A DNA stretch of 63,371 nucleotides, the filler included, from Octopus bimaculoides (Eukaryota): the NCBI RefSeq assembly GCF_001194135.2. It is 6 parts of 5 records of this genome, joined end to end, with 100 filler letters (N's around TTAATTAATTAA, not from the genome) between each part and the next. Parts side by side here need not be neighbours in the genome. Positions count along the whole stretch, not along the records: positions 32,816 to 48,544 come from NC_069008.1; 5 more parts are not named here. One strand, 5' to 3'. A program made the position numbers and the translations under genes. This document shows, piece by piece, positions 34,269 through 44,696 of the stretch; position 1 is the first letter of the stretch; every line of letters begins with the position of its first letter. Below the pieces are notes generated by a model. It made no database searches, had not been told where the DNA came from, and was given only the letters and a program-made list of their open reading frames with translations.

Positions 34269-34335
34269 CTGGAATCGATGGAGCATCCAGCAATGTAAAC
34301 TGTACAACCATGAGGTCAGACGAGAGGCGTCCTAT
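34269..34335 (-). CDS. Host gene exon 13
   Basis: tttctattacag|ATA ... CCAG|gtaagt; 67 nt, phase 0 to 1; IGRLSSDLMVVQFTLLDAPSIP. Confidence 0.88.
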
Positions 34336-34517
34336 CTGTAATAGAAAGGGGGGGGGGTGAGTATAATGGTTAAAAGGAGAAGTGATGGAGGTAGTGAGAC
34401 GCAAGGAAGTGGGGGGTGGTAGCAGAGACTGCGTTTGTGAGGTGGATAGCAGTGGGGGGTGTTTGAGGTGGAGAAGAGGGACCAGTGTGTGTACACGTGT
34501 TTGATGTGGGTACATAC

Positions 34518-34627
34518 CTGCATGTTACTGATTCTTACTGAGGAAACATTTGCAGCCCGAGCCAAGGAGTTTCGCAATGATGGGAAGATGAGGCTTTCGT
34601 AGCCCTTGATGTATATGTCGAATTTAT
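34518..34627 (-). CDS. Host gene exon 12
   Basis: ctgacccag|AT ... CAG|gtatgt; 110 nt, phase 1 to 0; (D)KFDIYIKGYESLIFPSLRNSLARAANVSSVRISNMQ. Confidence 0.88.
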
Positions 34628-34749
34628 CTGGGTCAGAGAGAAAAAGGGAAAGAGAGAGAGAGAGAGAGAGTGAGTTAAGGAGAAAGTCAAACAAATTATG
34701 TATACTCTCTATTATTATTATTATAATTATTATTATTATTATTATTATT

Positions 34750-34920
34750 TTGGTTTGACTCAGCTTTGGTCTTATTCCTGATAGGATTTATGTGGGTAGC
34801 GGGTTACTACCTGTAACCTTAGGTGTCCACAAGTTTTCAGCAGTCTTTCAAGTGCTTAGAGCCCTCCTCATAATCCTTGCTGTCCCTAAGAGACAAACTT
34901 TCTGTAGGGGTTCTACTGGG
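34750..34920 (-). mobile_element. R4/Dong-like RLE retrotransposon 3' end
   Basis: EPLQKVCLLGTARIMRRALST* plus 3' UTR; (TAA)n on both sides; lies in host intron 11. Confidence 0.75.
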
Positions 34921-36198
34921 TTATTATTATTATTTTTATTATTATTATTATTATTAATAATAATATGAAAACTCACAGCTTATTTTGCTGGGTATGGTGG
35001 AAAATGTCTAACGATATGCCATACTGTTTCACCCCTCTCACCACATTAGTCTGCATCTGTCCCTTTCGGTGGTGTTGTCTATTCTGAACTTTACATAGTT
35101 AGTCCTTAAAAACTTATTCTTCTGCTGTGCATATGAGTGCTTCTGTCCCTATCTTCAGGTCACTCCTCCTCATCCATAGCCACCAGCCCCCTCTCTACCT
35201 GTCTTGGCATTCACATCTCTTGCAAACTGACCATACATTTTCTTTTCCTTCCATACTTATTCTTTTTCTTCTTTTTTTTTGTTCATTTCTTGTTTAAATT
35301 TTTCTTTATTTACACAATTTTTCAGTTTTGATGATACCAGCCTTCTTCCTGTGCTTGAACAGTGGCCCCACAGCATTTTTATATAACCNNNNNNNNNNNN
35401 NNNNNNNNNNNNNNNNNNNNNNNNNNNNNNNNNNNNNNNNNNNNNNNNNNNNNNNNNNNNNNNNNNNNNNNNNNNNNNNNNNNNNNNNNNNNNNNNNNNN
35501 NNNNNNNNNNNNNNNNNNNNNNNNNNNNNNNNNNNNNNNNNNNNNNNNNNNNNNNNNNNNNNNNNNNNNNNNNNNNNNNNNNNNNNNNNNNNNNNNNNNN
35601 NNNNNNNNNNNNNNNNNNNNNNNNNNNNNNNNNNNNNNNNNNNNNNNNNNNNNNNNNNNNNNNNNNNNNNNNNNNNNNNNNNNNNNNNNNNNNNNNNNNN
35701 NNNNNNNNNNNNNNNNNNNNNNNNNNNNNNNNNNNNNNNNNNNNNNNNNNNNNNNNNNNNNNNNNNNNNNNNNNNNNNNNNNNNNNNNNNNNNNNNNNNN
35801 NNNNNNNNNNNNNNNNNNNNNNNNNNNNNNNNNNNNNNNNNNNNNNNNNNNNNNNNNNNNNNNNNNNNNNNNNNNNNNNNNNNNNNNNNNNNNNNNNNNN
35901 NNNNNNNNNNNNNNNNNNNNNNNNNNNNNNNNNNNNNNNNNNNNNNNNNNNNNNNNNNNNNNNNNNNNNNNNNNNNNNNNNNNNNNNNNNNNNNNNNNNN
36001 NNNNNNNNNNNNNNNNNNNNNNNNNNNNNNNNNNNNNNNNNNNNTCTGATAAGGGGACACCAGGCACACACATTTACACATGAGCATGCATTCTACCTCC
36101 CCCTTTCATGATTACTACCACCCTCCACCCACCCTGTCCATCTCACTCACCCCCCCGCCCCCCTCACTACCTCGCCCCTCATGCTGCCCCCATCTTAC

Positions 36199-36373
36199 CT
36201 TCTAACTGGAAGTTGATATAAAACCTTTCTCTCAAGTGGAAGCAGCTTTCTATGTTGAAGTTGTCCAGGTGGACGTGTCCCTGCACGTAACCATAGAGAT
36301 GTATCCATGATTCGTTTATTAACTCCACTGTTCCATCATCATCATCATCATCATCATCGTTGTTGTTTTTTGG
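36199..36373 (-). CDS. Host gene exon 11 (poly-Asp from a GAT microsatellite)
   Basis: tttatttacag|CCA ... GAAG|gtaaga; 175 nt, phase 0 to 1; PKNNNDDDDDDDDGTVELINESWIHLYGYVQGHVHLDNFNIESCFHLRERFYINFQLE. Confidence 0.88.
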
Positions 36374-36566
36374 CTGTAAATAAAGGAAATAAGATATTGT
36401 TAGGTATATATAAATATATCCACCCACCCATACATACATATATACATACATAAAAAATGCAGAAAGGTGAAAGCTGATTCGAAGACTACAGATCCAATCC
36501 CTCACTGGAACTGTAAAAATCTGAGGATTTCTAACAGCAACAACAACAGTAACCATGACAACTTAC

Positions 36567-36617
36567 CAATTTGAAGGCTTTTTGAAATATTCCAATGGGG
36601 ACGGCGGTGTGAAGCGT
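36567..36617 (-). CDS. Host gene exon 10
   Basis: ttttgtag|ACG ... TTG|gtaagt; 51 nt, phase 0 to 0; TLHTAVPIGIFQKAFKL. Confidence 0.8.
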
Positions 36618-37369
36618 CTACAAAACAACAACAACAGCAATAATATCTATAATAATAATAATAATAATAATATGTGCGTGTAATTATTTATACACACGCA
36701 AATGGATGTATTCTTTTACTTTATTCTTTTACTTGTTTCAGTCCTTGACTGTGGCCATGCCGGAGCACTATCTTTTAGTTTAAGAAATCAGCCCCAGGAC
36801 TTATTCTTTGTGAGCCTAGTATTTATTCTATTAGTCTCTAATGCCAAACTGCTAAGTCACAAAGATGTAAACACACTAACATTGGTTGTCAAGCAACGAT
36901 TGAGGGTGGGGACAAGCACAAACACACTCACAATCACAAACACACAGACACACGCAGGCGGCAGGCTTCCTTCAGTTTCCATTTACCAAATCCACTCACA
37001 AGGCTTTGGTCAGCCCAAGGCTATGGTAGAAGGCACTTACCCAAGGTGCCATGCAGGGGGGGGGGCCTGAACCTAGAATAATTTAGAATTTGGGTATACA
37101 CCTTGTAGTATGCAGTTTAAAGCCTGTTCACTGTATTTGGCTACCTGATGTCAACGTCAGTATGGCCCTAAGTATGACTGGGTTTATTTCAGGAATTCCT
37201 TCATGTCCATAGACTTTACTAAAAATATGAGAGAAAGAAAAAGAAAATGGAATTCATGAAATGTTTTATTAATCACTATGATTGCTTTGAGCCATTGTGT
37301 GTCAGCTGACAGGCCAATTCATGTGTCTCTTCCGTGGTTGTTTTAGGTGAGTGTAGAATATGGAATTAC

Positions 37370-43017: not shown

Positions 43018-43430
43018 TTTATGATACATGCGTGTGAACTGCCATTCTACTCAGCAGTGAAACATAGGCCATGAATGCTGGGGACATGCGTAGGCTTGAA
43101 AGAAATGAAGCTAGTATGATCCGCTGGATGTGTAATGTCAGAGTGCATACACAACAGTGTGTAAGCACCCTGAGAGAAAAGTTGGACATAAGAAGCATCA
43201 AATGTGGTCTGCAAGAGAGATGGTTGAGCTGGTATGGCCATGTGGTACATATAAATGAAGACAGCTGTGTGAGGAAGTGCCACTTCCTAAATGTAGAAGG
43301 AACCTGTAAAAGAGGTGGACCCAGGAAGACATGGAATGAGGTAGTGAAGCATGACCTTCGAACATTGGGCCTCTCAGAGGCAATGACAGAAGACTGGGAC
43401 CTTTGGAGATATGCTGTGATTGATATACAG
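43018..43430 (+). pseudogene. 5'-truncated RTE LINE 3' end (in intron 2, antisense to the host gene)
   Basis: MRRLERNEASMIRWMCNV...WLSWYGHV...RGGPRKTWNEVVKHDLRTLGL...DWDLWR matches the RTE C-terminal motif set. Confidence 0.9.
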
Positions 43431-43630
43431 GCACATATATATACCCAGCACTGAAAATAAGTAACTTCCAAATGTGATTTACTGCTTATATATTTTGCTG
43501 CAATTATCAGACCTAGATGGGATAAAGTCTGCAAAACACCTTCGCAAAATAAGCTAAACTGCCAATGCTAAGTGTCTGATTTCTATGGTTTCTATAAAAT
43601 ATTGTAATGGTGATCACTCATTCCTCTTAC

Positions 43631-43766
43631 CGTTGTAATAAACAATCTTCTGGTGCTTGTAATCAATTATTTGTGTTCTCTTGCGGTGACGTCTGTACTC
43701 AGTGATTGATCCAGCCTTTAGTTTAGTCATGTCATAATACTCCTCCACCAGGCTCGTTTGGTTCCG
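43631..43766 (-). CDS. Host gene exon 2
   Basis: cacag|CGG ... AACG|gtaaga; 136 nt, phase 0 to 1; RNQTSLVEEYYDMTKLKAGSITEYRRHRKRTQIIDYKHQKIVYYN(G). Confidence 0.85.
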
Positions 43767-44205
43767 CTGTGGTGGTCATGGTCAGAGTTTTGTGTTGGGG
43801 AAGCAATCATGAAAAATAAGAGAATATATGACAATCATTCATTTCTCAGAAACTATAGAGGTTAATAAGTTATTATATTGGATATCATGAGAGTACTTTT
43901 TAAAACTTCAGCTTTTAGACAAGAGAAAAGAACCAAAGTTCATGAACTCATCCATGAAAATCCAGTCACATATAGAAAAATTTGATAAGTAAATACACTA
44001 AAAAGAACTATGTATGCTAGGTAAGTGCTGTAATGGATTACGCAGGATTACACCTAAGGACTTATGCACTTATTTCTACATCAGGAAGTTGAACTGTCAA
44101 CCTTTATGCTTCTTTTTTCTTCTCTCGCTTCATCTCCTTATTCCCTTACTCCCTTCCTCCATGTTGTCATTTCATTAATATATACCCTTCTCATTTTCCC
44201 TATTT

Positions 44206-44260
44206 GTCTCTGATGACGGAATACCACATACTCTGGGATATCCCGAAACAGCTGTAAGAC
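44206..44260 (+). ncRNA. Type I hammerhead ribozyme (canonical core)
   Basis: gtct-CTGATGA-cggaatacca..tgggatatccc-GAAAC-agct-GTA-agac; stem I gtct/agac, palindromic stem III acagctgt, GUA cleavage triplet. Confidence 0.8.
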
Positions 44261-44336
44261 TGAATTTTTTTCGAATAATAATTATGTAAATGATTTGAGA
44301 TGATTGCTTGCCTTAATGTTTGCTGTCTTCTCTAGC

Positions 44337-44374
<38 letters not shown>

Positions 44375-44528
44375 GCATACACACACACAATCTAATGCAT
44401 TGCCTCTGATCTAAACATCACACATAGCAATAGAAGAAAGTGATACAGTATGCAACATCAACAACAACAAAATGTCCAGCCCTTGGTGGGGCTGCTGTCA
44501 ATAAAAGTTAATACCAGTGATACTCTAC

Positions 44529-44696
44529 CATGACGTCTGTAAGCTGGATTCGAGCCTTGAACATCTGTGGCAGCAGGCGGAAGATGTGTGGTGGGGGCTT
44601 CGTTTTAAGGGGTTTGCAGGTGCCTAAACAGCTGTCTGACCCATGGAATTGTAGAAGCAATACAAGTGTGAGAATTTCAAATAATGTCGGCAGCAT
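44529..44696 (-). CDS. Host gene coding exon 1 (signal peptide; secreted or membrane ependymin/LolA-like repeat protein)
   Basis: tatttcag|ATG ... ATG|gtagag; 168 nt, ends phase 0; MLPTLFEILTLVLLLQFHGSDSCLGTCKPLKTKPPPHIFRLLPQMFKARIQLTDVM has a hydrophobic N-terminus. Confidence 0.85.

Follow-up and report, generated by a model that had tools for sequence, protein, structure and literature searches.

A gene, incomplete through assembly gaps, for a two-basket membrane protein

We analysed a window of 63,371 nucleotides (nt) from the Octopus bimaculoides genome, made up of six joined parts and their filler. We consider it likely that its minus strand carries most of LOC106873330, the orthologue of Octopus sinensis LOC115226298, and that this gene encodes a membrane protein with two beta-baskets and a putative role involving hydrophobic ligands. 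Positions are those of the whole joined stretch, in which the gene lies within the part taken from NC_069008.1 (32816-48544). The original prediction, made from the sequence alone, described a hidden gene of 13 exons at 34269-44696. The gene is real and conserved, and it is only partly present in the window, with some of its exons hidden by assembly gaps. The strand needs correcting, since every motif quoted in that prediction lies on the minus strand.

Thirteen AG...GT exons were rebuilt on this strand, and their cumulative phases (0,1,0,1,0,0,1,0,0,0,1,0,1) reproduced those previously given. Twelve of them aligned singly to the O. sinensis orthologue (631 aa) in tblastn searches against the window (E 4e-5 to 6e-42), and the exons matched one by one in this way are referred to as verified. 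The remaining one, exon 3, proved to be spurious, the true exon falling in the gap at 40809-41222. The coding length of 1546 nt or 515 codons therefore has to be lowered, as the 12 verified exons total 1433 nt. The window exons were identical at 340 of 340 residues to RefSeq isoform X2 of O. bimaculoides LOC106873330 (342 aa), so the window locus is LOC106873330 and the gene, described as hidden, was already annotated in RefSeq.

A protein search with the joined translation matched O. sinensis LOC115226298 with 87% identity, together with LOC106873330 isoform X2, a protein from Argonauta hians and two proteins from sequencing-run assemblies. Two further word-indexed homologue searches with alignments yielded nothing beyond the same five cephalopod proteins. 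Over 472 codons aligned with O. sinensis, the synonymous rate (dS) was 0.154 and the nonsynonymous rate (dN) 0.017, giving a dN/dS of 0.11; the gene is clearly under purifying selection, far beyond chance. Sequencing-run data also contained a 2.7-kb Logan contig with an unbroken 608-codon reading frame for one homologue, and the simplest interpretation is a spliced mRNA with the same architecture. The verified exons are as follows.

44529-44696, minus strand: exon 1, 168 nt; ATG at 44696, hydrophobic signal-peptide-like segment, first conserved Cys and LPQMF at the start of domain 1; orthologue residues 4-60 with 96% identity (tblastn, E 8e-30)
43631-43766, minus strand: exon 2, 136 nt, ending in phase 1; EEYYD and IIDYK part of domain 1; the tblastn match (E 1e-22) covers orthologue residues 60 to ~105 and fades in the intron sequence beyond the donor
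40444-40588, minus strand: exon 4, 145 nt; INGIPVKAVRSCVC...EYFL...PVRVEMKG, domain 1; 94% identity to the orthologue (tblastn, E 5e-24), and the same as RefSeq X2 from M138 of the rebuilt model on
40056-40150, minus strand: exon 5, 95 nt; VKRPDGKTEPFTYIYQFLTFDP...VFQ, domain 1; tblastn and RefSeq identity
39679-39801, minus strand: exon 6, 123 nt; final part of domain 1 (VPQGVIC) followed by the opening of domain 2 (LPNILPQF...), with the boundary placed by hhalign; tblastn and RefSeq identity
39471-39576, minus strand: exon 7, 106 nt; VLFDWQEKL...ITDYRL, domain 2; tblastn and RefSeq identity
38086-38249, minus strand: exon 8, 164 nt; GIQYNLDNNFRPC...FNYKGK, domain 2, with an invariant Cys; 91% identity (tblastn, E 5e-28)
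37370-37462, minus strand: exon 9, 93 nt; LNVRGLTVDVWGRK...REYYFLK, domain 2; tblastn and RefSeq identity
36567-36617, minus strand: exon 10, 51 nt, in frame; TLHTAVPIGIFQKAFKL, domain 2; tblastn E 4e-5
36199-36373, minus strand: exon 11, 175 nt; poly-Asp loop and last part of domain 2 (NFNIESC), then the opening strand of domain 3 (RERFYINFQLE); 96% identity (tblastn, E 1e-24)
34518-34627, minus strand: exon 12, 110 nt; DKFDIYIKGYESLIFPSLRNSLARAANVSSVRISNMQ, domain 3 (DUF7959); 95% identity (tblastn, E 6e-17)
34269-34335, minus strand: exon 13, 67 nt; IGRLSSDLMVVQFTLLDAPSIP, domain 3; ends in phase 1 at a GTAAGT donor

Exon 6 spans domains 1 and 2 and exon 11 spans domains 2 and 3, which identifies the locus as a single gene rather than merged tandem genes. 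In RefSeq isoform X2, translation begins at a Met inside exon 4, exon 10 is skipped and the exon 13 donor is read through to 'GK*'; this model is truncated by the same assembly gaps. Exon 10 is kept in all other cephalopod homologues, and its skipping in X2 reflects either alternative splicing or a gene-model error.

Domain architecture and internal duplication

The O. sinensis orthologue consists, in this order, of a signal peptide, domains 1, 2 and 3, one transmembrane helix and a cytoplasmic tail of ~15 residues. Domain 1 is an ependymin/LolA-like beta-basket of ~205 residues with four conserved Cys, and domain 2 (~220 residues) is its diverged tandem duplicate, in which two Cys are invariant and which carries a poly-Asp loop; the juxtamembrane domain 3 is an alpha/beta domain of ~130 residues corresponding to Pfam DUF7959. 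The signal-peptide-like start that had been proposed holds: the N-terminus MLPTLFEILTLVLLLQFHG contains a 19-mer with a mean hydropathy of 1.54, and the model of the orthologue has a helix at residues 6-22.

The internal duplication claimed from short motifs was borne out by profile-profile comparison. With profiles cut from an alignment of 51 family sequences, hhalign aligned domain 1 with domain 2 over 196 columns (probability 99.7%, E 4.4e-27), and all six motif pairs of the original prediction were in register. BLASTP of domain 1 against domain 2 gave a non-significant, out-of-register alignment (E 0.32); the duplication became visible only with profiles. The profile of domain 3 showed no resemblance to those of domains 1 and 2, in agreement with the prediction of a distinct domain after the two repeats, and domain 3 also gave a model of its own. 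Six Cys are invariant or present in at least 90% of the 51 sequences, namely C31, C109, C157 and C232 in domain 1 and C314 and C455 in domain 2 (orthologue numbering). All of them are found in the window except C109, which sits in the exon lost to a gap. From the EPDR1 pairs C42-C172 and C113-C210, disulfides C31-C157 and C109-C232 would be predicted by analogy.

The orthologue has a hydrophobic 19-mer at residues 594-612 (hydropathy 2.11) within a modelled helix at 591-621. This C-terminal transmembrane helix is found in the orthologue and in three further cephalopod homologues, and in none of the readable exons of the window. The protein is predicted to be membrane-anchored, of type I, with the anchor seen in the orthologues and not in the window. 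Seven N-glycosylation sequons were counted in the rebuilt 13-exon model, and six are left once the NHS at 112, located in the rejected exon 3 candidate, is removed.

The loop of domain 2 contains a poly-Asp/Asn run (NNNDDDDDDDD; window 36331-36363, minus strand), which is more extended in O. sinensis, far more so in Argonauta, and absent from two more distant homologues. This run is a fast-evolving low-complexity insertion.

Predicted fold

The AlphaFold2 model was obtained for the orthologue with the 51-sequence alignment, and not for the incomplete window protein. It had a mean predicted local distance difference test (pLDDT) score of 84 and a predicted template modelling (TM) score (pTM) of 0.76, with two long all-beta regions, an alpha/beta domain and the terminal helix at 591-621. 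In Foldseek searches of the PDB, the top matches were ependymin-related proteins: frog 6JL9, sponge EPD-BCP1 8I34, human 6E7O, 6JLD and 6E8N, and mouse 6JLA (E ~2e-6 to 2e-5, TM 0.56-0.69 on the target). These were followed by RseB, LolA, MucB, VioE and LolB (E 3e-6 to 2e-3, TM 0.5-0.6 on the target), and the Foldseek probability was 1.00 for EPDR1, EPD-BCP1, LolA, VioE and LolB. A LolA-like open beta-basket fold is confirmed for the orthologue model.

Domain 3, modelled alone, had a pLDDT of 90.6 and a beta-alpha-beta-beta-alpha-beta-beta layout. Foldseek found nothing below E 0.039 for it in the PDB, and the best structural matches were generic ferredoxin-like folds (the MgtC C-terminal domain, NikR and ribosomal protein S6) and EpCAM. 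These matches are too weak for domain 3 to be called a SEA domain or any other named domain, and it remains a membrane-adjacent domain of unknown function (DUF).

The family and its distribution

In precomputed Pfam records, the orthologue is assigned to PF25898 (LolA_2nd_metazoa), with a weak match to PF25899 (DUF7959), and the RefSeq X2 product is assigned to PF25898. Direct Pfam scans of the window model and the five cephalopod homologues, carried out with a model set lacking PF25898 and PF25899, identified no meaningful family. An exhaustive phmmer search with the orthologue retrieved 206 cluster representatives at E<=1e-3, 98 of them at E<=1e-10. Most of these representatives are 600-700 residues long, and many align from residue ~20-45 to residue 630. 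Full-length homology with the domain order of the family was found, the window exons being 87-100% identical to the orthologue and to RefSeq X2.

The members sampled come from gastropods, bivalves, chitons, a brachiopod, annelids, a nemertean, echinoderms, a hemichordate, amphioxus, a myriapod and a rotifer, and no vertebrate was present among the ~30 members whose source was looked up. One paralogue was identified in O. bimaculoides. The sampled members are labelled 'uncharacterized' or 'hypothetical', except for a sea-urchin 'LolA-like domain-containing protein' in UniProt, and a literature search by locus names and Pfam names found no papers. The family is already catalogued (PF25898 and PF25899) and is widespread in invertebrates. 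Among the checks proposed with the original prediction, those for homologues (the 206 representatives) and for a fold match (Foldseek against the PDB, with the orthologue model) gave positive answers, and an orthologue, LOC115226298, and the O. bimaculoides paralogue were also obtained.

Assembly gaps, the third exon and the ends of the gene

The gaps at 38560-38817 and 35389-36044 are intronic, since the orthologue residues are continuous across them (at residue 302 and at residues 470-471, respectively; tblastn) and the flanking intron sequence is syntenic. By contrast with these, orthologue residues 106-145 had no tblastn match anywhere in the piece. At the O. sinensis locus, positions 29879-30218 align with window 41642-41295 and positions 30985-31131 with window 40808-40666, and exon 3 is located at 30636-30755, between blocks that align with both edges of the window gap at 40809-41222. 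The unmatched residues and the synteny of the gap edges indicate that the true exon 3 is hidden in this gap. The missing or uncertain parts of the gene are listed below.

40809-41222, no strand given: gap holding the true exon 3, ~119 nt; orthologue residues 106-145, ATSCWVSPLSS...AQVADAV, with the second conserved Cys
33280-34072, no strand given: gap that probably holds exon 14 (orthologue residues ~530-565), as placed by synteny
48082-48093, minus strand: possible exon 0, 12 nt, ATGTTTCCCGAG followed by GTAAGT; encodes MFPE, in phase with exon 1

Between exons 2 and 4 we counted 179 stop-free, phase-compatible AG..GT segments, so that a 'perfectly chaining' third exon is to be expected by chance. 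None of these segments provides the 113-nt exon 3 that the total of 1546 nt would need. The most plausible candidate, at 43450-43401 ('VLGIYMCLYINHSISPK'), was rejected: no homologue has anything corresponding to it, it is placed antisense in an open reading frame (ORF) of a putative retrotransposon tail, and it is one of the 179 chance segments. Every exon 3 picked from the readable sequence is spurious. The ORF in question, of 127 aa, occupies window 43071-43454 (plus strand) in intron 2, antisense to the gene, and includes the motifs ...RWLSWYGHV...GGPRKTWNEVVKHDL...; we take it to resemble the C-terminal tail of ORF2 of a retrotransposon without long terminal repeats (non-LTR), of the RTE or long interspersed nuclear element (LINE) type. 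The long open frames observed on both strands at 43020-43570 are due to this ORF.

The extent of 34269-44696 also has to be revised. Exon 13 ends in phase 1 at GTAAGT, so the reading frame is unfinished at 34269 and the gene continues. Orthologue residues 530-631 had no tblastn match in the piece; in O. sinensis they are encoded by three more coding exons, which provide the rest of domain 3, the transmembrane helix and the short tail. The last syntenic block pairs O. sinensis 43843-43927 with window 34235-34147, and O. sinensis exon 14 lies ~650 nt further on. Exons 15-16, with the transmembrane helix and the cytoplasmic tail, are probably beyond the end of the piece at 32816. At the other end, the gene probably has a 12-nt upstream start exon at 48093-48082, on the basis of the automatic gene model of the orthologue; this exon 0 matches the first bases of the O. 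sinensis model without a difference and falls within a block that is otherwise ~76% conserved. Two lessons for annotation follow from this locus: assembly gaps can truncate a gene model, as exemplified by isoform X2, and a phase-perfect chain of exons can still include a chance exon.

Several features of the noncoding sequence were also noted. The gap at 35389-36044 comprises 656 N, against only ~26 bp between the syntenic blocks in O. sinensis plus ~100 unaligned window bases; either its length has been overestimated or O. bimaculoides has an insertion. The first intron spans ~13 kb packed with repeat copies in O. sinensis (locus 10001-23095) versus ~3.4 kb with three assembly gaps in the window (44697-48081), where it may have been collapsed. 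Interspersed repeats of ~150-350 nt are present in the introns (window 37565-37894, 36722-37082, 41292-41595 and 45498-45645), with many copies in the O. sinensis locus (72-89% identity), and are probably related to short interspersed nuclear elements (SINE-like). Rfam and tRNA scans of the piece gave no matches. The neighbours in O. sinensis, a GT4-family glycosyltransferase gene upstream (locus 1274-6135, minus strand) and a zf-MYND/PDCD2_C gene downstream (from 57660, plus strand), are both absent from the window piece.

Putative function and alternative explanations

LolA carries lipoprotein acyl chains. For the ependymin-related protein EPDR1, a deep hydrophobic groove and binding to anionic-lipid liposomes are documented (PMC6363788), and a sponge ependymin-related protein binds carotenoids (PMC10470211). 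By extension from the roles of ependymin-related and LolA-type proteins, each basket of the octopus protein probably accommodates a hydrophobic ligand, be it a lipid, sterol, carotenoid or acyl chain, and the protein would present these ligands, or shuttle them, at the membrane's outer or luminal face. The two covalently linked baskets may then play the part of the two grooves in the EPDR1 homodimer. It is conceivable, although we regard it as doubtful, that the tandem baskets form an intramolecular pseudo-dimer mimicking the EPDR1 homodimer, tethered by the DUF7959 domain and the transmembrane helix, and that the family is a class of membrane-anchored lipid or pigment carriers or receptors.

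Several observations weigh against a ligand-binding, ependymin-like membrane protein. VioE and RseB are LolA-fold enzymes or sensors rather than carriers, and we know of no family member with a known ligand, localisation or phenotype. The transmembrane helix and tail are known from the orthologues alone and lie outside the window. Against the Pfam Ependymin profile (PF00811), the window model gave no hit up to E 10, and the five cephalopod homologues likewise gave none up to E 1. A search of the PDB by sequence with the family profile retrieved no EPDR1 chain. Alignment of each domain with human and mouse EPDR1 by hhalign, the EPDR1 sequence having been checked against 6E7O, was weak (E 0.011-0.015; probability 4% at E 0.011); the register was as expected, with C109 paired with EPDR1 C113, and we did not count this as evidence alone.

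Across the wider family, 13 of 51 members matched the Ependymin profile at E<=1. The best match (E 5.7e-5, 23.1 bits) was below the Pfam gathering threshold of 32.3 bits, which no tested member reached. The partial matches covered profile positions 6-43 and occurred in either domain (five members examined individually); the motif Y.i.dy..g..y.id....C is common to the family and the ependymins, and it is the portion that Pfam Ependymin detects. Searches of the PDB by sequence with phmmer and profiles gave no ependymin chain and only noise. Thus, the assignment to an ependymin/LolA-like family stands with regard to the Foldseek matches to EPDR1, EPD-BCP1 and LolA and the Pfam LolA_2nd_metazoa records, but not at the level of the Pfam Ependymin threshold. 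The protein is a remote ependymin/LolA-fold relative and not a member of the classical ependymin family.

Among the alternatives, it seems rather unlikely that the baskets carry no ligand and that the protein is a structural or adhesive surface glycoprotein, or a receptor using the LolA-like fold for protein-protein contacts. Such a role would suit a type I membrane protein that retains six sequons without the rejected exon 3 candidate; the EpCAM ectodomain is among the weak best structural matches of the juxtamembrane domain (E 0.11; TM 0.47 on the query), and RseB and MucB are LolA-fold sensors that bind a partner protein. However, the EpCAM similarity is not significant, and the closest structural relatives, EPDR1, EPD-BCP1 and LolA, all bind hydrophobic ligands in the basket (PMC6363788; PMC10470211), as proposed for the two baskets here.

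The integrity of the locus can also be questioned. The absence of exon 3 and of the last three coding exons from the readable sequence, together with a truncated RefSeq model that begins at an internal Met and leaves out exon 10, would be compatible with a decaying pseudogene or a non-functional fragment from which the missing exons have truly been deleted. We consider this very improbable, because all 12 readable exons are open and have canonical splice sites, the dN/dS ratio relative to O. sinensis is only 0.11, the missing exon 3 maps exactly into an N run flanked by syntenic intron sequence, and the other missing exons map to a gap or past the end of the piece. We give almost no credence to the wrong chaining of two neighbouring single-domain ependymin-related genes into one model. 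EPDR genes (those encoding ependymin-related proteins, EPDRs) are often found in tandem clusters, and multi-ependymin-domain models in Branchiostoma and Amphimedon were treated as prediction errors by McDougall et al. (PMC6280359). Here, however, domain 1 ends and domain 2 begins inside a single exon (39801-39679), no stop, second signal peptide or intron separates them, and the same end-to-end architecture recurs in ~200 representatives across many phyla and on the unbroken 608-codon contig.

Were the two baskets indeed to act as a pseudo-dimer, the family would constitute an unstudied class of carriers or receptors present across many invertebrate phyla, amphioxus and a myriapod. No member of the family is known to have been studied, and the ependymin-related proteins, as binders of lipids or pigments, are poorly understood in their own right. 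A tethered two-basket protein would be a reasonable subject for work on ligand binding and localisation, and we saw no sign of an unexpected mechanism.

Comparison with known systems

The bacterial proteins LolA, LolB, RseB and VioE have the same open beta-basket fold as the octopus protein and no detectable sequence similarity to it. RseB and MucB also join a LolA-like domain to a further domain. Bacterial LolA-type proteins are periplasmic, lack disulfides and serve the Lol lipoprotein pathway, for which we know of no counterpart in animals.

The EPDRs (EPDR1/MERP, the fish ependymins and EPD-BCP1) share the same beta-basket fold and are the best PDB matches, and a signal peptide and N-glycosylation sequons are common to them and the octopus protein. 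The order of the four Cys of domain 1 is that of EPDR profile 1, whereas domain 2 keeps only two of the four (PMC6363788; PMC6280359). Classical EPDRs consist of one domain, are ~213 residues long, occur as secreted or lysosomal proteins and assemble into homodimers. The octopus protein differs from them in its two covalently linked domains, its third domain, its predicted membrane anchor and its sub-threshold Pfam score; instead of the classical layout of a single secreted domain of ~200 residues with four Cys, the 631-residue orthologue has two baskets, domain 3 and a transmembrane helix. A 2018 survey found no EPDRs in ecdysozoans (PMC6280359), whereas the family described here includes a myriapod.

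Relative to the metazoan LolA-like family there is no difference in kind: the window copy is incomplete through gaps, and domain 2 has a cephalopod-specific poly-Asp/Asn insertion. At the sequence level, 87% of residues are identical in the O. sinensis orthologue, against 20-30% in family members of other phyla. LOC115226298 of O. sinensis, LOC580499 of S. purpuratus and LOC106173269 of Lingula anatina have the same architecture and length, align from end to end, and share the conserved Cys and the C-terminal transmembrane helix.

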